Of a stretch of 64,000 nt of DNA, positions 6,353-50,700 are shown piece after piece. The notes beneath the pieces are model-generated. The model worked only from the letters and a program-made list of their open reading frames with translations. It searched no databases and was not told the DNA's origin. The stretch is from positions 35,718-99,717 of the forward strand of contig JAAPAO010000056.1 of assembly GCA_013115145.1 (NCBI GenBank). Reading direction: 5' to 3'. Made by a program: the position numbers and the translations under genes. The DNA comes from Perkinsus chesapeaki ATCC PRA-425 (taxonomy: Eukaryota > Protista > Perkinsozoa). Positions within the stretch are counted from its first letter, which is position 1, and every line of letters begins with the position of its first letter.

Positions 6353-7976
6353 CTAGAAAGTAACAATAGACTCATAACCACCCACTACGATCATCAATAC
6401 ACTCAAGGCCATCATGGCGAAGAGAATAGTAAGCTCTATCCTACTGGACTTCCACACAGTCATAAACGAACCTTCATTGAGGACACGCATTCTTATATAG
6501 AAGATACCAGGAAGTATGCCTGCCATAGCTGTCATAGTGAAAACACTTAGCAGGTCTATGAGCTTCTGGACACTAGGAACAACAATAGCGATAACAAGAG
6601 TAATCAACACTAGTATAGTGCGTACAGTGATACGCTTGATAGTCGGTACCATTCCCTTGGCCTCCTCTGGGTCATCTACCCGGTATGGAAGAAGTGGTAA
6701 TAACAGATACTCCAACGAGGCGGCGATAGGGAACAATAATACAATGTAATGAGGAAAGCATAGACATATAAGTGAAATGACACATGTGTATCCCCAACCA
6801 TCTAAACCTCCTGTAGGGGGTGCAATCCGATCAATAATGGGAACATTCACCAACGAGTTGCCGTAACCGAAATAGCCACATCCAGCAATGCCGCCGTAGA
6901 TCACAAAAATGCACAAGTACGAGACAGTGGCAACTTTCGGTAATGCACTTGGTGTTTTCATATCCCGAATGAGGGTAGCAAGCACGTTGGTGACATGGTA
7001 TGAGAGCATCGCATTGCCAAAGGAAACGCCGAATTCTAGAGGATTCCATATCCACCAGTCATAGTCGATCTCTTCATCGGTAGTGACTCCATTGGTGATA
7101 CCGTTGACAACGATAAGAATGAACAAGACAATAAGGGCCGCCATGCCGAATGCGGATACATAGGAAACTTCATTAAGCGATTTGAGCCATGTTAGAGGCC
7201 AGCAGATCGCTGCCCATATGCAGCACCACACCTTACTAGACAGACCAGCCATTGGAATTAACTTCTGAGTGTTTTCTCCCAACAGCAACAATAAAGTAGA
7301 GCAGCAACCAGTCATAGTAATATGAACTATTCCAGCAGTGAGAACAGCGCCTATGGGACCAAAGCATACATAACCAAGCTGTTCATAGGTGTTGATGGGT
7401 TCTCCTTTAGGGTGACTTGTATAAGCTACATAAATCTTTCCTACCATATGGTTGGATATTACAGCCACAATAAAGAGAATAAGTAAACCACCAAACCAGC
7501 CGCAGTTTGCGAATGTAGTAGGCAACATAATAACGCCAATGCCTAACAAAGATACATATCAAAACCACCTTTGAATGGGAGATGCTTACCAATTGCCGTT
7601 AGAATTAGATTAAATACAGATCTTATATTACTGCACTTCCCTTGAGGTGCCGTTGAAGGATTAGTAGTTTCTAGATCAGCAGAAGTAGCCTTAGAGGTAA
7701 CGTCGGTGGTGTCAGTATTGGCGGTGGTAGTAGTGGCACTAGTCTCAGAGAGTGTCACCTCCTGGGTGAATATCTCCGAATCGCTTGAAGCATGATGCTG
7801 TTTTTTGAAGTACCCAAGACACGTACCGGCCATACACAAAGAGAGGGGGAATCAGCGTTCCCACCGTTATTCGTCTCAACTAAAAAGTCAATATCATCTT
7901 CGAGCTCGCAAGAGACTCCTATGGCTCCAGAGCACAAAATGCCGCTAGCTCCAGAAGGTGGTGAAGGTGAACTCAA
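6353..7976 (-). CDS. AAAP-family amino-acid transporter (Aa_trans), tandem copy 1
   Basis: 398-aa multi-TM ORF plus 5' exon CSNIRSVFNLILTAIG joined by intron 7543-7589. The start is either 7976 (via a 29-nt intron 7798-7826) or about 7839. Confidence 0.9.
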
Positions 7977-8277
7977 GACGTGGGGTGGATATTAGCTATA
8001 GAAACGATACCTGATATCAAACTTGAAAGGAACGTCAGATGGTGCCCGCACGGCATCGTCTAGGCTATTCGCTAGCTAGCTGATAGGAGACATGAACTTT
8101 TAAGGAGTATAAACAGCAGTAGATAGGATTCGTCTTCAGTTCGTGAAGTCGAGGAAGTAAAATGCTTCGCTCAAATCGCCAGCACAGCGAATGATCTTCG
8201 TACTTGAAACGGAACAAGAGGCAGAACGTTCCGTCCCGGAACATGGGGGCCAGTTCTGCCATAAATGAGATTGAAGA

Positions 8278-9675
8278 TTAGAAATCAACAATCGACTTAT
8301 AACCACCGGCTCCCATAACTAATAGACAAAGGAGAGTGAGAGCACACAGAAGGCACATTTCCAGTCGATGAGCCTTCCATACAGCCTTCAATGAACCCTC
8401 GTTGTATACACGTATCTTTGTATAGAACAGAGCAGGGAGGACTCCAGCCATAGCGATCATGGTAAAGACACCCATAAGATTTATCAACTTGTCTACACTT
8501 GGAACGACAATAGCGATAACAAGGGTGATGGCTACCAGCACAGTGCGTGCTACGATTCTCTTTATGAGATCGCGCTTTGCCGTGCTATCGACATCGATGT
8601 TAACAGCGTACTCGAGAGAGGCAGCAATAGGCATGAGGATGACCAGATAATGAGGGAAGGCCAGTAGGAGCATGGCGATCACTGCAACGTAACCCCATGC
8701 ATCTAATGGCTGACCAGCCGGAGCAATACTGTTCATGATTGGAACTTCAATCAGATTCCGTCCATATCCGTAGTAACCACAAGCTCCAACGCCAACGTAG
8801 ATAACGAAGACGATCAGCAAGCCTGCCGATGCGGTCTTCGGGAAGGCTGATGGGGTGATCATCTCACGGATGAGGGTGGGTGTAGCACTAGCCATCTGGT
8901 AGGAGAGAATAGCGTTACCGAATGACACAGCCCAAGTGAGGGCGTCTCCGTTGAAGAGATCATACTGGATGACCTCATCAGTGGTGATACCGTTCTCGAT
9001 ACCTTTGGCGGCGATGATAATGAAAAGCGCAATGACGCCTATCAAACCAACCATCGCAACATAGGAAATCTCCTTTAGAGATCTCAACCAAGAAAGGGGG
9101 AGGCATATGCAAGCCCAAATGACGCACCATACAGTAACAGAGAGCTGCGGTGCTAGCTTTTGGGTGTTCTCGCCTAATAACAGAAGTAATGTGGCGCAAA
9201 CACCAGTCATAGTCACGTGCACTATAAGGGCGGTAACGATCTGGCCAACACGACCGTAGCAAACTCTGCCGAGCTCCTCGTATGTATTAATAGGATCACC
9301 TTTTGGATGATTCGTAACAGCTTGATACAACTTGCAGACCATATAGTCCGAGAGAGCGGCGGCGACAAATAAAACCAAAATACCACCGATCCAACCACAA
9401 GTGGCCATAACAGTAGGCAAAGTAATAACGCCCAAACCTGATAGGAAATTACCATAACAAGCGTACAAATGAGGAAAGCACTTACCGATAGCCGTGAGCA
9501 CAATGTTGACGATGGAACGAATGTTGGAACACTTATGGGAGTTGTCTTCCTCATTCGATTCTCCGGCGTTGGCCTTGGAATCAGACCAATCGCTGCTGGT
9601 AGTAGAGTCCTCTGAAAGATTTAAAGAAGCCATAGAGCCTTGGTGATGTTGTTGTTGCTTATCAGCGAGGCTCAT
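8278..9675 (-). CDS. AAAP-family amino-acid transporter, tandem copy 2
   Basis: Multi-TM ORF with TAIG|LGVITLP. The intron 9438-9485 is 48 nt, in-frame and stop-free. Likely ATG at 9675 (MSLADK). Confidence 0.92.
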   Translation of the reverse strand: MSLADKQQQHHQGSMASLNLSEDSTTSSDWSDSKANAGESNEEDNSHKCSNIRSIVNIVLTAIGKCFPHLYACYGNFLSGLGVITLPTVMATCGWIGGILVLFVAAALSDYMVCKLYQAVTNHPKGDPINTYEELGRVCYGRVGQIVTALIVHVTMTGVCATLLLLLGENTQKLAPQLSVTVWCVIWACICLPLSWLRSLKEISYVAMVGLIGVIALFIIIAAKGIENGITTDEVIQYDLFNGDALTWAVSFGNAILSYQMASATPTLIREMITPSAFPKTASAGLLIVFVIYVGVGACGYYGYGRNLIEVPIMNSIAPAGQPLDAWGYVAVIAMLLLAFPHYLVILMPIAASLEYAVNIDVDSTAKRDLIKRIVARTVLVAITLVIAIVVPSVDKLINLMGVFTMIAMAGVLPALFYTKIRVYNEGSLKAVWKAHRLEMCLLCALTLLCLLVMGAGGYKSIVDF

Positions 9676-10332
9676 ACGGCCACGAAGCAAAAGAAAAGAA
9701 GAAACGCTCAAACTGGAATGATAGCCCACTACTAACCAGAAGTTCTGGTCCAGAACGACAAGTGACATCTAGCCTGGACAAAACCATATCTGCTAGGAAG
9801 TTGACGACGGGAAAACACCAAACTTTGCCCCCGTGAGGTATTTATTGATTTTGCTATAAATGGCAAAACTTGTACGAGCGATTAGTGGGACACAGGTGCA
9901 CCAGTGGATCAGTCCCCTCAGAACATCAGGCCTAACGCGAGACGAATAATGGAGTAGAGTTAATGTAGGAAACGGTAGCTCAGAGGAAGGAGCATGAAAC
10001 CCGCACGGTAACACTCTCGATGGCTCAGAAAACCGAACCGGAAAAGGAACATTATGGTACGAGCAGCCCTCCTCTATGGCTAGCTACTCGAAGGATAACG
10101 TAAGAGGAGATGGAGGCTACACGCAGAAAGGGATTAGATAGGCTGCTATCGGCCCCGCTAGAGCTAACGAGATCTGAATGAACAGGAACAGAACTGTGAA
10201 CCGGGATCGCAAGGGACGCCGGCTCGAGAGTATATAACATAGGGATCTGGTTAGTTCTCCCTCGCGGAACTTATTAGCTGTTAAAAGACTTGGTCAAAGA
10301 ATGAGAATATCGAGGACGGCGGCCTTTTCGCC

Positions 10333-11741
10333 TTAGAAGTTAACAATAGCGACGTAGCCTCCTGCTCCCATTAGTAGTAGGCAGAGGAGGGTTAAGATAA
10401 GCATAGTAGACATTTCAATCCAGTTGGACTTAATCACAGCCATTAGAGATCCTTTATTCAGGACTTTCATCCTAACATAGAAGAGGGCAGGCAGAATAGC
10501 AGCCATAGCGATAACGGTGAAGACGCTCATAAGGTCGATAAGGTTGTTTACACTAGGAACAGTAATAGCGATAACAAGGGTGATAGCCACCAGAAAAGTT
10601 CTAGCCAGCGCTCTCTTAATGAAGTCGCGCTTTGACGAGCTGTTAATATCCACCTTAATAACGTACTCAAGTGAGGCAGCAATAGGCATTAGTAGGACGA
10701 GATAGTGGGGGAAGGCCAGAGCTAACATGGATATCACCAGAGCATAGCCCCAAGCATTCAGAGGCTCATCGGCTGGTGCAATGCTGTCGAGAATCGGCAC
10801 TTCGATAAGGTCCCGTCCGTAGCCGTAGTAGCCACATGCTCCTACACCAACATAGATAGCAAACACTATGAAGAAACTCACAGTTGCAACCTTGGGAAAG
10901 GCCGACGGGGTCTTCATTTCTCGTAGCAGATTAGGAGTGGCACTGGCTATCTGGTAGGAGAGAACCGCGTTACCTATCGATATAGCCCAATTGAGGGGGT
11001 CATTGCTGATAAGGTCGTACTGGATGTCCTCATCAGTGGTGATGCCGTTCTCGATACCTTTGGCGGCGATGATAATGAAAACGGCAATGATGCCGAGGAG
11101 GCCAACCAGCGCAACATAGGACAAATCCTTCAGAGATCGAATCCACGACAGAGGCGTGCAGACGGCAGCCCAGATGACGCACCATACAGTAACAGAGAGC
11201 TGCGGTGCTAGCTTTTGGGTGTTCTCGCCTAGTAACAGAAGTAGCGTGGAGCAAACACCAATCATAGTGACGTGCACTATAAGGGCGGTAACGATCTGGC
11301 CAACACGACCGTAGCAAACTCTGCCGAGCTCTTCGTAGGTATTAATAGGATCACCTTTTGGATGATTCGTAACAGCTTGATACAACTTCCAGACCATATA
11401 GTCCGAGAGAGCGGCACCAAAGAATAGGACAATAACGCCACCGATCCAGCCACACTTCGCCATGACGGTCGGGAGGGTGATGACGCCCAAACCTGAAATA
11501 AAACGAAATCGAACCCGATACCTCGCGCAAGAAAGTCCAACGACTAAACCACTACGCCGTTCATCTTACCGATAGCTGTGAGAATGATATTCAAAATTGA
11601 TCGAAGGTTAGAGCATTTTCCCTCATCAGGATCGTCCATCACGGGAATGCTAGGCTTGCTGTCCAGGCTGTCCTCCTCAGCTACTGAGGATGCAGTCCGA
11701 ATAGTAGTAGTAGGAGAGTCAGATAGATTCATCTGGCTCAT
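10333..11741 (-). CDS. AAAP-family amino-acid transporter, tandem copy 3
   Basis: 385-aa ORF plus 5' exon (MSQMNLSD...CSNLRSILNIILTAIG) joined by intron 11493-11569. Confidence 0.92.
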
Positions 11742-11988
11742 TATGGCCGTTAATAAGAACAACTACCGATATCTACTTCGCAAATGCACTGCAACGCAAC
11801 AACATCCTAATTTGATAAAACCTATAATTGTCGGGCCTCCACGTGGTACCGATTGCACCGAAGTTATAGCAGACAGAAAGATACGATCTTGGGTAATGTA
11901 TAAGGCCTAGTGGAGGTTTCGGAAACATATTGGAGAAGCGTGTTGACGCTACCAGTAATACGGGTTAGAACATTCTAGGGAATCGGAC

Positions 11989-13314
11989 TCAGAAATTTTT
12001 TATTGCTGAATAGCCACCAACTCCCATGATAACGACAGCTAAAAGTGTCAGGAAGACCAATAGTACAAACTCTGCTGTACGGTTCTTGAAGACTGCCATG
12101 AGCGAGCCTTGATAAGTGAGAGCCCGCATGCGAAGGCAAAGCAGAGCTGGTAAAATCATGGCAATTACAACCATGGTGAAAACGCCCAGTATGTCGACTA
12201 ACTTTTCGACCGATGGAACTACTACAGCCACTATGAGAGTGACTCCAACGAAACAAGTACGAATGACAATCCTCTGTAGAGTGCTCCGCACAGACGTACT
12301 TAACACGTCTACTTTAAAAGCGTATTCGACTGAAGACACGATCGGTAAAAGCATAACGAGGTAGTGTGGAAAACACATAAATAATATAGCAATTACCAGA
12401 CAATAACCCCAAGCATCCAAGGCCTTTCCGGCCGGAGCGATACTATTAATAATCGCATTATTTATCAGACTTCTACCATAACCGAAGTAGCCACAGCAAC
12501 CAACTAGAAAGTAAATAACAAAAGTCAGTCCAAGCCCGATTGACGCCACCTTCGGGAACGCACTCGGAGTCCTCATATCGCGGATTAGTGTCGGTGTGAT
12601 GTTAGCTATTTGATAGGCCAATATAGAGTTACCAAAGGACACCGTCCAAGCCAGAATATCTGAGCCTAGCAGGTCATAGGTCACATCACCGTGCTCTTCA
12701 ATGCCTTGCACTATGCCTTGTGCGGCGATGATAACCAGCACGGCAATAATGCCCACCAGACCAAGCGACGATACATAGGTTATTTCCTTGAAGGACCTCA
12801 ACCACGAGAGGGGAGTGCAGACAGCCGCCCAGACGCACGTCCAGGCCTTAGCGGAGATCTGTGGAAAAATCTTCTGTGTATTCTGACCCAGCAAGAGCAG
12901 CATCCCCGAACAGGCCCCGGTCATGGTCACGTGGACAACGAGTAAAGTGATGACCTGCCCGACTCTGCCGTAGCAGACTTTGCCCAGTTTCTCGTAAGTG
13001 TATATAGGTTCCCCGGTAGGATGGATGCTGACTGCGGTATGGAGCTTGCAAACGAGATAATCAGTAATAACGGCTCCTATACAAAGTATGATAGCACCGC
13101 CGATCCACCCACACCGGGCGACCACGCTTGGTAATGATACGATTCCCAAACCTGAAAAAGGTAAACATGAATTGTTTCGCTCCGCTCAAGACTTACCAAT
13201 GGCTCCCAGTATAACGTTTATAACCGCGTGCATGTTGCTACATTTCTTACTGGCCTCTGCATCAACTTTCGCCTCAACCGCATGGGAAGCATTTCCGACG
13301 CTGACGTTGGCCAT
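11989..13314 (-). CDS. AAAP-family amino-acid transporter, tandem copy 4
   Basis: 386-aa ORF plus 5' exon (MANVSVG...CSNMHAVINVILGAIG) joined by intron 13152-13196, at the same phase-1 position as in the other copies. Confidence 0.9.
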
Positions 13315-45331: not shown

Positions 45332-46303
45332 CTAAGTGAACACTGGAGCGAGCACGTGGAGGCGTCTGGTAGTCTCGAGGAGCCAAAACCTCCGGTTTGC
45401 CTGAGCGAATAACCTGCACCCTCGGAAGCTGTCGGGCAATGCATATACGCCAAGTAGCGCTTCCGACACCAAGTCGAAGTGCCACAACTTCATACCGTTC
45501 ATCCCGCGCGAGAAGCCGCACAGCCAGGCTTGCCTTCTGCAAGATTCCACCTCTAAGTTGCCGACTGCGAAGTCCACTGTGAGCAAACTTCGACAGGCCG
45601 ACCCTGCCGTCCACTGGACCAGCGAAGACTCTGGATGCCTCCTCAGGTCTGTGCGTATCCAGAAGAGCTCCGTCTGGCCTTGGTAGGATGTAGCGACCAG
45701 AGACTGCAGCTCCTCCTGGGCGCTGTAGACCACAACCCTCTCCCCGACAACCGAGGCGACATCCACCCGAACAACTTCCTCGTGGTTCTCGCCGATCCAC
45801 AAGCCGTACACAAAACCGTCGCCACAACACCGAGGAAAAATGATCCCGCCGCCAACCCGATCTGCCCCCACTGGCGACCTGATCGGGTACCCCTCCCCGA
45901 ACGAAATCACGCTCCCTGGACTTTGCCAGTCTCGCGCTAGGTACAGTGTTCGGTTGATGGCATCGATCCAGATCAAATTGTCAGTGCTAGGGTCCACGCA
46001 GACACAAGATGTCGGCCGGTGCTCTGAAGTGTTACCCATCACAGTGGTAATTCCATCCAAGCCGACTCGCTCTAACACAGTACGATGGCCATCCTCTACT
46101 TGCCATGCGAGACCACGACCACCTGGGAGTTTGAAGGGCAGCAAGCCAATGGTGTCCGGTCTGGTGGAAGCGACTTTGAAGCCCTCAAGAACCGGCTTAG
46201 CATGGGACCAAATCTCATACCGATACTCAACAGATTCTACTCGACGGTCGAGCCATTGGAGAACAAGCGCTGTCCTCTCCCGTGCATCGGTGTAGCCTTC
46301 CAT
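45332..46303 (-). CDS. Intronless hypothetical protein, beta-propeller-like
   Basis: ORF of about 323 aa from MEGYTD, with repeated beta-strand motifs (CVDPSTDNLIWID, VVRVDV, LFWI, KLWHFDL). The ORF-track start at 46423 overlaps the LspA last exon. Confidence 0.6.
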   Translation of the reverse strand: MEGYTDARERTALVLQWLDRRVESVEYRYEIWSHAKPVLEGFKVASTRPDTIGLLPFKLPGGRGLAWQVEDGHRTVLERVGLDGITTVMGNTSEHRPTSCVCVDPSTDNLIWIDAINRTLYLARDWQSPGSVISFGEGYPIRSPVGADRVGGGIIFPRCCGDGFVYGLWIGENHEEVVRVDVASVVGERVVVYSAQEELQSLVATSYQGQTELFWIRTDLRRHPESSLVQWTAGSACRSLLTVDFAVGNLEVESCRRQAWLCGFSRGMNGMKLWHFDLVSEALLGVYALPDSFRGCRLFAQANRRFWLLETTRRLHVLAPVFT

Positions 46304-46382
46304 GCTTAAAAAGAGACTGCGGCCGTGATCGCTCCGACCACAACGCAAACACAGTGCATTTCTATTTGTCTGAAAAATAGTG

Positions 46383-47656
46383 TTATTCTTTCTCTGCATT
46401 CTCTTTCTTCTCTGCTGCCGCATTCTCCCTTGCTGTAGCCCTTTCCGAGAGGTACCCCTGATATCTGATCAAACAAAAGAGCGGTATGAACTCACCGTTA
46501 AAAGCAACTTACACTAGCGTTCCGAAGGCTGCATTGATAACCAGGTCGCTTAGGTTCCATGCCAGATAATAATGTCGGCCAAAGATTGGATCTTCCCCAG
46601 AGATGCTGACATAGTCTACCACCGCCCCGACCAGAAGACGATCGAGCCCGTTCCTGAACAACGACCACTTTTTCCACGAAACGCCGCGAGGCTTACCCCA
46701 CAGCTCCCACCATGAAGATGAAGATTCCCAACTTGTTCCGCCAGTTGGCATCTTTCTTGATGAAAAAATAGACAAAAGCGCCGGTAAGGAGGAGAATGGA
46801 TACGCTCATCATCGCCCAGTAAAGCGTGCGATTAATGCCCCGAGCAAAACTGAGGATAGAGATAACCGACTCGAGAAGCATTCTCCTCACCTGAGTGCCG
46901 AATGACGATTCTCTACATAGCACACGTCGAATTCTAAAACCGAACTAAATCTGAAGGAGATATGGTGCGCAGTTGCTGCATTGGAAAACTCACATGCTCA
47001 ATATTGAGCCCGACGGACGGAAGCGGTTGGCCAAGTACTTCAAGGAGAACTCTATGGCGAGAAAGAGCCCACCAATAGTCCACCATTTTAGGGGGTAACC
47101 AAAGCCCACAGTATCTTCATTACTGTGACCATGATCGACCTCAGAAGGACCTGACAACAGAACAGTCGAGGTAGCATGAAGCCTTTCAGCCTGTATCTAG
47201 CTGGAATCACCCAAGGCCCCTGAATACAAGTACTCATATATTCGTGGGTGCCCTCACTACAACAATACAAATTACTGCACGGGCTAATGCACTCTCAATT
47301 GAGATAGAGAAAACATCCGAGCTGACCGCCGGCCAGTGACCGGCGTCCCCTCAATGTACTCAATTCCGAGCGCACAGCTATTTTCCTTCCAAGCGGATCA
47401 CCATAGAGAAGCTGACTCGTCGAGAGCGCTGCTTGAATGGGAACACTTTAAAAATACCCTCCCAGTATCGAAGCCCAGTATCTCCCAGGCGAAATAAGGC
47501 TGTTACGGTTACAGTGTTACCCGATAAGCGACAGGGAGCCTTTCTTAATGCTATGTGTCATGTCTTACCGTTGGCGTCCTCGGGGGCGGGGGCCTGCCCG
47601 GAATCCCCAGGGCCCTCTGCGCGGCGGCGAAGGTTGGATTCCTCGCAACTGGACAT
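46383..47656 (-). CDS. lspA: Lipoprotein signal peptidase II (peptidase A8), spliced eukaryotic gene
   Basis: Five GT-AG introns (47151-47568, 46951-46993, 46850-46890, 46654-46696, 46465-46512) give ...VENRHSALSF...GIFIFMVGAVGNGLDRLLVGAVVDY...LAWNLSDLVIN..., with hydrophobic segments fitting four TMs. Confidence 0.88.
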
Positions 47657-47733
47657 CGGTACGAAAACTACCAATCAGGGAACCGAATTAAAACACAAGT
47701 CGGTGAAGTGGTAAGGCAAAATGTGCTAGACAA

Positions 47734-50700
47734 CTAAGCTTTGAAAAAAGCTATAAACTTCTGCCAGACATCGCTCGTAGCAATGCCTATTATGAGGCCA
47801 CTGCCTAGCAGTAAGAAGATGATCCCAGTGGGACCAAGAAAGTAGACAGCCAGACCGCCGCCTACCGCGAGGCACGAAACTGTTAACCTGAAGCAGATAA
47901 ACAATTGTGTGAGGTGCAGCAATTTTGAGAGAATGTATGAGAGACGCTACTCACACGCGAGACTAGATCTTAGAATATAATGGAAATCCTTCTACCATAA
48001 CATTTACCGCCACCACAGGTATAATAGGGGCGCGGTGCCTTTCAGGAAATCTTTTGTGTGACATGTGCACGTCGTGAGCTGCACGCATGCGCACATGACG
48101 ATCAAAGATCCTTCGTCAGATGCTCATATAATTCACCAACATTGTATGATTGCGGATCTTTTACAAGCGCCGCTTCGAACGAGAGTTGTGATTCGAAATA
48201 AATAAATGTGCCAGTAACTATTTTACATTCGGAGAGGATGAGATGCAGGTGAAGGGTCATCACCCCGATCACTGAAGATATATTCAACGAGAGCTCCCCA
48301 GTTGACTGCCGAAATACCGTGACCAACTTTTCACTCCAAGACTCAGGATTGTTGTATTGCCGCACCGTAGGACCCTCCAATCTGTACGAGGCAGAAAGCA
48401 AGAGCAATGACTCACATTGCTTCCTTGCTGCTCAGCAACTTCATCACCGCATCGAACCTCGATTTCCTCGGATCATCGAGACATTCACCAATGTGATCTC
48501 GCAAGGGGTGGAAGACCAGGTCTCCAAGGGACAAGTCGGTGAAAAGCTGAGGGACTCTGCCATCCAAATCTAAGCACGAAAATCTAGTGCCGGCACAGCT
48601 TCACCGATCCTACCCTTCAGCGCAGCGTATCTTTGCGTCTCATATTCCAGTACAATAGCATCACCTAAATAGCACCTAAATGCTTCTGGAAAAGCGACCG
48701 TTTCCTACCGTATTGTTCAGCGCACTGCTCTCCTCCCCACCCGAGCTGCACGTCTATGTCAACATCGGACGGGTCGAATTTCCTGAACGTAGCCTTCTGT
48801 TTTCTCAGGGACACCACCAAGTCGTCGGCCTCCGCCTTGGAAGTCTTGGGCCCAAGGAGAACGCAATATCTGAGAAAAAACGTGATAATCGTCGGAGGAA
48901 AAGTCGGAATACTTCTAGCGAAGTGCGCATATCACCATGCTGGAAAGCGCAGTGTTCTGCCCACTTCCCACCAAGATAAGCGAACAAGAAACCGAACGGA
49001 GGTGATTCCCAGCTCATTCGTTCAAATCTTACATTTTCATCGAGTCCGCCACACCCTTAGCTGGTCGACACAGCTCCTTAACATTAAGCTGGTTGATCTC
49101 CAACGGCACTTCTCTCATCATCTCCGATAGTGTTTCCTCGATCGTTCTAGTCTTCAAATGCCGCGTAGTAACCTCTTCCCCGCCGTCTGCAAAATGACAA
49201 TAAAACCCCCGACAACCTTTGCAGCTTACACAACAGTCTGGCAACAATATCATTCCTCCGCTGCAACTCGTGATCGCCATTGACCACCAGAAACCTCATT
49301 GCGTGAGAAAATTTATATCTGAGAAAGAAGAGAATGCCAATTGAGCCCAGAGGGGGTCCCTACATCATCGCCTTCAACAAAGGAGTGGTATGAGCTGCAC
49401 GCGTGCGCAATACCATCACCGGCCGATCTGAAAGAAGCAGTCCTAATTTTCAGCGCGGTGATTCGCGTACCGCTCGCCAGCGCCGCCTCCTCCGCGGCGT
49501 CTGCAGTTTCCAGCGTAGTATACATAACCGGTAACTCATCGAGTATCCACCTAAACTAATGAGATGACCGCGCGCTACGAAATTCATGAAGAGCGTACCT
49601 CTTCAATGTGACCGGATTGATATCTGCTATGGGCATCAAGCTCGGGGGTATCTCCGGATGCGCTGGCATGAAACGGAAAATCGTTGGAGTTGTTCGGGGT
49701 GTTATTGGCAACGACTTGAACAACTGAAATGTGATGATTAAGCCGTGATTCTCGTATTATTGTTGATAATTAAAGGCTTCTGTAAATTCTAAGAAAATGA
49801 TATTCAAACAAATCTTTTGAAACTATAAAAAATGAAGGGTGAAGTTAACGGAAGTATAACCTGGAACGAACGCGAACGCGGAGAGCGACGCCTCCGGGAA
49901 GCATCTTGTTCACAGAAATGTGCCCATAATGCTGGACAGGTCGAAAAGTTTATTCTGTATTTGAATTTCCAAGCCAAGTGCAGGAGAGCTCTTCTATGCA
50001 TGTCGGAATCAATCCATTCCAACAGAAGATGGTTCCTTGAGGGTTCAACAACTGGGAATTTGGGCCAAACTACCTCAAAAGATTCTCATGAAAAATATAA
50101 AATACACAAGATACCAATATACATTCCGTATTTCGAGGTTTCTCCTCAACACACGATTGCCTGGCACATTTCCACACGATGAAGGTCTCACCCCTCTATC
50201 AGTCTGGGAATTAATCCTTCCAAACTTGATAAAGCCCTTAAGGTCACTGGCAACTTCATCCCATGCTGGAGCGATATGGTGACAATACTTATCCAAGTCC
50301 GAATACACCTGACACATAAGAAGGAGTATCGTTCACTCAGAAAGTCTTGATAAAAAGTTGACCAGAGAATTATTGGTCCCCTTCAGAGGTTCAAATGCAA
50401 TGTCGAAGGCGTCGTTGGAACTATTAATTTGACAATCGAACAGAAAACCACGAAGCTGAATGAACTTCAAAGCCAGTAAATGACTTCAATTCAAGAACGT
50501 ATATAAAACGCCAATAAGTAAGCCTGGCCATCATAGCCTGCTCAATCGCTCACCTCAACAATCCATATATCCACTGAGTGATCCATGATACTATGATAGT
50601 TCTCAGTGGTAAGCCTTGTTGAGTAATCACTCGGTATTGAATCATATCCACCTATTCGTGCATCGCTCCGCCTACCCTCGTATTTTTCCACCTACCTCTA

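Follow-up and report, generated by a model that had tools for sequence, protein, structure and literature searches.

The window analysed here is a 64,000-nucleotide (nt) stretch of contig JAAPAO010000056.1 (positions 35,718 to 99,717, forward strand) from Perkinsus chesapeaki ATCC PRA-425, and its minus strand carries, at 47656..46383, a six-exon gene for a protein related to bacterial lipoprotein signal peptidase (LspA, signal peptidase II). The spliced exons form a 681-nt frame encoding a 226-amino-acid (aa) protein that ends in KE followed by the stop codon, and all five introns begin with GT and end with AG (Table 1). A first-pass annotation, made from the letters alone, had joined five GT-AG introns into one frame at this place, and our model contains every peptide that it quoted. 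Four small 454 metatranscriptome runs with the label marine metagenome supplied RNA contigs that are 100% identical to the window over the exons and omit exactly the bases of introns 1–4, confirming these introns to the base. Intron 5 lies outside the RNA cover and is backed by the six-exon structure common to P. marinus and P. olseni and by an orthologue protein alignment that is continuous across its junction. Intron 4 cuts the codon of Gly153 right before Asn154 and thereby splits the GNxxDR motif, as the annotation had read it.

The 5′ ends of the transcripts provide a further eukaryotic signature. In all four runs, the RNA starts with 19–21 letters that are not in the genome and whose reverse complement is CCGTAGCCATTTTGGCTCA, the sequence that PMC9399869 prints for the dinoflagellate-type spliced leader, and this leader is attached at an AG acceptor shortly upstream of the start codon. 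The TTTT form of the leader may originate in the primer of a spliced-leader-primed library, because the leaders of P. marinus read TCTT or TCT.

Table 1. Features of the LspA-like gene in the window, in the order of transcription.
Feature	Position	Strand	Remarks
Trans-splice acceptor AG	47668..47669	-	Spliced-leader junction in four RNA runs, 12 nt before the start codon
Exon 1, ATG 47656-47654, acidic disordered N-terminal extension	47569..47656	-	LRRRAEGP motif kept in three Perkinsus species
Intron 1, 418 nt, GT..AG	47151..47568	-	Joint seen in 4 RNA runs; positional counterparts of 415 nt (P. marinus) and 243 nt (P. olseni)
Exon 2, rest of N-terminal extension and transmembrane helix 1	46994..47150	-	Glu63/Lys67 correspond to Asp23/Lys27 of P. 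aeruginosa LspA
Intron 2, 43 nt, GT..AG	46951..46993	-	RNA joint in 4 runs; position conserved
Exon 3, beta-cradle strands and YVENRHSA motif	46891..46950	-	Asn96 corresponds to Asn54; His98 in place of Gly56
Intron 3, 41 nt, GT..AG	46850..46890	-	RNA joint in 4 runs; position conserved
Exon 4, transmembrane helices 2 and 3 with basic KKDANWRNK loop between	46697..46849	-	Ends within the Gly153 codon
Intron 4, 43 nt, GT..AG, splits GNxxDR	46654..46696	-	RNA joint in 2 runs; position conserved
Exon 5, GNGLDR, beta hairpin, start of transmembrane helix 4	46513..46653	-	Asp166 (46616-46614), Asp189 (46547-46545)
Intron 5, 48 nt, GT..AG	46465..46512	-	No RNA cover; positional counterparts of 46 nt (P. 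marinus) and 50 nt (P. olseni)
Exon 6, end of transmembrane helix 4, charged C-terminal tail	46383..46464	-	Stop TAA 46385-46383

The LspA-like gene is a true eukaryotic nuclear gene of P. chesapeaki. Bacterial contamination, which the first-pass annotation had considered unlikely on account of the intron within GNxxDR, or a chimeric assembly would have to account for five spliceosomal introns, four of them RNA-confirmed, together with a spliced-leader 5′ end, and for the same gene with identical intron positions in the independent P. marinus and P. olseni assemblies. Furthermore, a J-domain open reading frame (ORF) lies upstream of the gene in the window, to be compared with the P. olseni gene, which is flanked by a DnaJ/thioredoxin gene and a TPR/FH2 formin gene. 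In addition, a scan of 185,579 prokaryotic species genomes yielded no relative with the clade motif AWN[IL]SDL. Contamination and chimerism are ruled out by the introns, the leader and the independent assemblies, and we rate their probability as next to nil.

Our model is identical at 226/226 residues to the public P. chesapeaki protein KAF4674861.1, to which UniRef (A0A7J6MVD7) gives the name "Lipoprotein signal peptidase". When exon 5 was used for an exhaustive search, a 223-aa protein was retrieved, 73% identical across this exon, and a search with that protein led to three named Perkinsus proteins, from P. marinus, P. olseni and P. chesapeaki. The orthologue of P. marinus ATCC 50983 (assembly GCA_000006405.1) carries the name "Lipoprotein signal peptidase, putative", and that of P. 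olseni is listed as a hypothetical protein in the protein search. In NCBI and UniRef, the gene thus already carries a lipoprotein signal peptidase annotation in three Perkinsus species, and its bare observation is not new. The P. marinus and P. olseni orthologues are 57–58% identical to the P. chesapeaki protein over the full length and share its motifs and six-exon structure, with exons of 88/148/60/153/141/82-85 nt and introns at the same codon positions; the N-terminal extension and C-terminal tail account for most of the divergence. Literature searches on signal peptidase II in Perkinsus or dinoflagellates, on PF01252, and on LspA with Lgt and chloroplast returned no account of a eukaryotic LspA and no paper on this gene.

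The surroundings of the gene are dense. The minus-strand genes at 46303-47736 are packed extremely tightly: the stop codon of the upstream ORF (47734-47736) precedes the spliced-leader acceptor by about 64 nt, and the ATG of the next gene (46303) follows the LspA-like stop codon at a distance of 79 nt, a gap within which the 3′ end of the LspA-like transcript, outside the RNA cover, must fall. This same-strand packing looks like a polycistronic unit resolved by trans-splicing. The downstream 323-aa ORF (45335-46303, minus strand) has no match in Pfam, and no tRNA gene was found in the 418 nt of intron 1. Elsewhere in the window, four tandem genes for Aa_trans (PF01490) amino-acid transporters occupy the minus strand of 6356-13149 (6356-7549, 8281-9768, 10336-11490 and 11992-13149), in what looks like a local gene-family expansion.

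As judged from its sequence and predicted fold, the P. chesapeaki protein belongs to peptidase family A8 (LspA, signal peptidase II), of which it is a divergent representative. The protein scores 59.2 bits against PF01252, well above the cut-off of 25 (E 7e-16, profile positions 5-138/142), which bears out the first-pass assignment, and its two orthologues score 65.7 and 70.5 bits. The translation of exon 5 by itself matches PF01252 at E 1.6e-4, and it has no match in a sequence search of the PDB. In the exhaustive search with this exon, three long proteins that matched in many stretches (1102–4157 aa, P0002-P0004) consist of RTX repeats and unrelated domains and were set aside as chance or low-complexity similarities rather than LspA. 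A profile of the eukaryotic clade described below matches the LspA of P. aeruginosa (9EMZ, 5DIR) at E 1e-21 to 6e-22 and that of S. aureus at 8e-17. In a predicted rather than solved fold, built by AlphaFold2 on 34 sequences with a mean pLDDT of 82.9, helices span residues 50–73, 109–132, 138–160 and 187–225, and strands span residues 77–96 and 164–185, so that the model displays the four-helix membrane bundle and the extracytoplasmic beta-cradle of LspA. A Foldseek search of the PDB with this model gives LspA chains as the only significant matches (probability 1.0, TM-score by target 0.68–0.78), and searches of the AlphaFold DB and the ESM Atlas likewise give LspA families only, the Atlas matches bearing no taxon.

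The catalytic pair is retained. In the alignment to the native-numbered chain of P. aeruginosa LspA, Asp166 and Asp189 coincide with Asp124 and Asp143, the catalytic dyad of the enzyme (PMC9360617), and neither varies among the 31 eukaryotic and 82 bacterial sequences compared (113 in all). Of the two aspartate motifs proposed in the first-pass annotation, both aspartates are therefore present, but the second motif reads N-L-S-D and not N-x-A-D.

Our profile search reveals about 30 further proteins at 167–300 bits, all from metagenome assemblies, whereas the next, bacterial, matches reach at most 48 bits. The length filter of this search would hide homologues longer than 395 aa, such as long dinoflagellate ones. 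A possible case is the 461-aa AlphaFold DB entry A0A1Q9F2D8, which bears the name "Signal peptidase II" and has 28% identity to residues 50–201 of the Perkinsus protein; we take its accession block to be that of Symbiodinium microadriaticum, in which case it would extend the family to dinoflagellates. The bacterial comparison rests on 80 fetched LspA loci, a sample picked by motif, hence biased, and without cyanobacteria. In a quick-search tree of 113 sequences, the 31 eukaryotic proteins form one group (SH-aLRT 100) against all 82 bacterial ones, and the stem branch between the two measures about 3.8 changes per site. Perkinsus is nested within the eukaryotic group beside three metagenomic sequences. 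No bacterial sister group of the clade appears among the 82 bacterial sequences, which include no cyanobacteria, so the tree points to neither a donor nor a route, be it horizontal transfer or an organelle. On this evidence, the eukaryote-only clade comprises the three Perkinsus species and uncultured eukaryotes with compact genomes.

The eukaryotic nature of the uncultured relatives is apparent from their genomic context. Four of them lie on long contigs (up to 189 kb, L001-L004) that are mutually syntenic and whose neighbouring genes are plainly eukaryotic, including those for histone deacetylase, RPL34e, a protein kinase, glutaminyl-tRNA synthetase (GlnRS), a BBP/SF1-type KH protein, an SPX-domain transporter and a DDHD lipase. 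The intergenic gaps are shorter than 100 nt, and the gene calls are single ORFs without interruption. One weak match, P0036, is located among bacterial ribosomal genes. The GlnRS of these contigs is most similar to that of dinoflagellates and Perkinsus, and a quick GlnRS tree with thin taxon sampling places the compact-genome lineage with P. olseni (SH-aLRT 94) and separately from dinoflagellates; because of this grouping, the uncultured relatives are probably Perkinsea. In pairwise terms, the GlnRS proteins (L001:9841-11844 and its relatives) are 52–59% identical to those of dinoflagellates, Perkinsus and diplonemids, and about 58% identical to that of Bdellovibrio, equal to other eukaryotes. 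The lineage has a very compact genome, in a style quite unlike that of the intron-rich Perkinsus.

The LspA-like proteins of these organisms (P0005, P0008-P0034 and P0045) are 32–38% identical to the P. chesapeaki protein and share its diagnostic substitutions, whereas their genes are intronless and lie on dense contigs between an upstream coiled-coil gene and a downstream protein kinase gene, unlike the Perkinsus neighbourhood. Gene order around the LspA-like gene shows no conservation between the Perkinsus window and the compact contigs, and the conserved upstream neighbour in the latter is the coiled-coil protein, not a prolipoprotein diacylglyceryl transferase (Lgt). The uncultured proteins also have short N-termini, and many of them end in KKXX or KXKXX.

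Bacterial LspA has 14 highly conserved residues grouped at the extracytoplasmic end of the helix bundle (PMC8689077). In P. aeruginosa numbering, Lys27, Asn54, Gly108, Ala109, Asn112, Arg116, Val122, Asp124, Asn140 and Asp143 are kept in 31/31 eukaryotic sequences. By comparison, four positions that are nearly or fully invariant in the sampled bacteria are altered: Asp23 (Asp in 81/82 bacterial sequences, with one gap) is Glu in all 31 eukaryotic sequences, Gly56 (82/82) is His in 25/31 and otherwise Phe, Tyr or Asp, Phe139 (82/82) is Trp in 31/31, and Ala142 (82/82) is Ser in 31/31. The contrasts at 139 and 142 are not an artefact of the sampling by motif, because the search pattern permitted either letter at these positions. 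If the 14 residues are those reportedly given in the 2016 structure paper of Vogeley et al., ten of them are kept and four replaced in all clade members.

These residues, together with the substitution pattern among the three Perkinsus species, bear on the possibility that an old gene transfer left behind a relic that is catalytically dead or in decay. Synonymous differences are saturated (pS 0.71–0.78), whereas nonsynonymous differences in the core are low (pN 0.13–0.24) and higher in the N-terminal extension, indicating that the gene is kept by purifying selection over a long divergence. A relic would fit the altered conserved residues and the score below the equivalog cut-off described below, neither of which is positive support for decay. 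It is difficult to reconcile with the invariance of both aspartates and seven further active-site residues in 31 divergent eukaryotic sequences, with a pN far under the saturated pS, and with a gene that is expressed and correctly spliced, and we regard it as very improbable.

The location of the protein can be approached from its two ends. The N-terminal 48 residues have a net charge of –7, contain no hydrophobic core, are modelled as disordered and are poorly conserved among the three Perkinsus species except for the short LRRRAEGP motif; the uncultured relatives are almost without an extension ahead of helix 1. These properties set the extension apart from signal peptides and from typical presequences, in agreement with the first-pass annotation, which had found that it does not look like a signal or transit peptide. 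With no cleavable targeting peptide, helix 1 would act as a signal anchor. At the other end, KKXX or KXKXX C-termini occur in 19/32 clade members (P0005, P0008, P0009, P0014-P0016, P0020-P0022, P0024-P0031, P0033 and P0045), compared to 3.2 expected from shuffled tails (maximum 9 in 2000 shuffles), although these counts are not independent because the sequences are related. KKXX and KXKXX are the classic COPI retrieval signal of endoplasmic reticulum (ER) membrane proteins with a cytosolic C-terminus. Many uncultured relatives also start with M..RTRS, and it is possible that these tails and starts serve an enzyme of bacterial ancestry as COPI-type signals for sorting to the ER. The loop between transmembrane helices 2 and 3 is strongly basic, and this loop and the C-terminal motifs would fit an N-in/C-in topology with the active site toward the lumen; in bacterial LspA, both termini are cytoplasmic (PMC8689077).

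The same features weigh on an organellar location, in which the protein would be imported into a relic plastid or the mitochondrion and would mature organelle lipoproteins as a leftover of an endosymbiont pathway. An organelle is the most natural home of a bacterial pathway in a eukaryote, and some polytopic plastid membrane proteins have no N-terminal leader. On the other hand, the extension of the Perkinsus proteins is acidic, with no signal-peptide core and conservation only at LRRRAEGP, the uncultured relatives nearly lack it, and many of them end in the di-lysine motif. The tree gives no cyanobacterial or alphaproteobacterial affinity, both groups being poorly sampled in it. We consider an organelle enzyme improbable.

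The reading that we favour, at about an even chance, is that of an LspA-like aspartyl endopeptidase of the ER or another endomembrane that acts on substrates with a lipid-modified cysteine supplied by an Lgt-like enzyme. Helix 1 would serve as the signal anchor that places the protein in this membrane, with its N- and C-termini on the cytosolic side and the two aspartates facing the lumen, an arrangement like the bacterial one. In this position, the enzyme would remove signal peptides just ahead of the lipid-modified cysteine, a chemistry that is proposed because the Asp dyad and the surrounding Asn and Arg residues are intact. The pocket may be tuned to a somewhat different substrate or lipid, as is suggested by the four clade-wide changes at bacterially invariant positions. 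The substrates would be produced by an Lgt-like enzyme that is apparently expressed in P. marinus, where the expressed sequence tag (EST) Pm04168 was reported in 2010, in passing among glycosyltransferases, with a BlastX match to prolipoprotein diacylglyceryl transferase at E 2e-23 (PMC2868825). Pm04168 is not listed in the supplements of that paper, and we found no follow-up of it in the literature.

Several observations weigh against the favoured reading. The Lgt lead is a single EST BlastX match from 2010 that could be a bacterial contaminant, and, according to reviews, higher eukaryotes have nothing equivalent to bacterial-type lipoproteins (PMC8689077). The di-lysine motif of many uncultured relatives is missing from the three Perkinsus proteins. 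At the level of the family, the P. chesapeaki protein scores 60.7 against the NCBIfam lspA equivalog (TIGR00077), under the cut-off of 73.95, and the uncultured relative P0009 also stays below it at 68.6, whereas the bacterial control P0036 passes at 80.1. Moreover, every clade member (31/31) has other residues at four positions where the sampled bacteria are invariant, and the altered pocket may no longer accept diacylglyceryl-Cys substrates.

An alternative is a protein that keeps the fold and chemistry and has taken a new job, namely an Lgt-independent aspartyl protease of the ER or endomembranes acting on different substrates close to the membrane, such as signal peptides of an ordinary or unusual kind, or the anchors of secretory proteins. 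The changed positions, the very long stem branch that separates the clade from bacteria, the score under the equivalog cut-off, the eukaryotic sorting-type motifs at the tails of the clade and the absence of reports of bacterial-type lipoproteins in eukaryotes (PMC8689077) all point in this direction. Yet the residues near the catalytic pair that bind and orient the substrate in bacteria (Asn54, Asn112, Arg116 and Asn140) are all kept, and an Lgt-like EST has been reported from P. marinus (PMC2868825). Weighing both sides, we regard a new, Lgt-independent job as possible but rather unlikely.

Under the favoured reading of an ER or endomembrane peptidase acting on lipid-modified cysteines, Pm04168 gains importance: if it is the parasite's own, the parasite has the two core enzymes of the bacterial pathway. 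Perkinsea might then run a complete bacterial-type lipoprotein pathway, Lgt-like and LspA-like, in the secretory system and display S-diacylglyceryl-anchored proteins, a proposal drawn from sequence comparison that we put forward tentatively and with some doubt. Were it true, it would represent a form of protein lipidation for which no eukaryotic example is known, and the pathway could be a target of inhibitors of the bacterial enzyme such as globomycin.

LspA has been stated to be absent from eukaryotes in reviews and drug-discovery papers (PMC9943842). Our analysis indicates that the family is present, expressed and conserved in eukaryotic shellfish parasites, with relatives among uncultured protists, and that the pocket alteration of the clade is seen in 0/82 sampled bacteria. 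If the Lgt partner is confirmed, eukaryotic bacterial-type lipoproteins would become directly testable in P. marinus, which is culturable and transfectable; if there is no such partner, the clade would be a natural experiment in the re-use of the LspA fold for another substrate. Either way, the LspA-like protein is a candidate parasite-specific target. The weight of the finding is tempered by the presence of the gene in public databases under the name of lipoprotein signal peptidase. What is new here is the RNA and spliced-leader proof, the conserved introns, the eukaryote-only clade, the four substitutions, the hint of a sorting motif and the link to an Lgt-like EST.

Two known systems invite comparison. 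Presenilin and signal peptide peptidase, the GxGD proteases, offer a possible functional likeness, as two-aspartate proteases of the ER membrane that act on signal-peptide-like segments. Their fold and motifs are unrelated, and the P. chesapeaki protein is not a member: neither a presenilin or signal peptide peptidase family (YD and GxGD motifs, nine-helix fold) in the Pfam scan nor such a structure in the PDB fold search was recovered. By comparison, the likeness to bacterial LspA (5DIR and 9EMZ of P. aeruginosa, 6RYO and 6RYP of S. aureus; MEROPS A8) extends to the predicted four transmembrane helices, the beta-cradle and the hairpin, to the size of the core and to the probable N-in/C-in topology. 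The Perkinsus gene differs from its bacterial counterparts in its eukaryotic nuclear location, its five introns and its spliced leader, and the Perkinsus protein differs in the added 48-aa acidic N-terminal extension and in an identity of about 20–25% to the bacterial enzymes.

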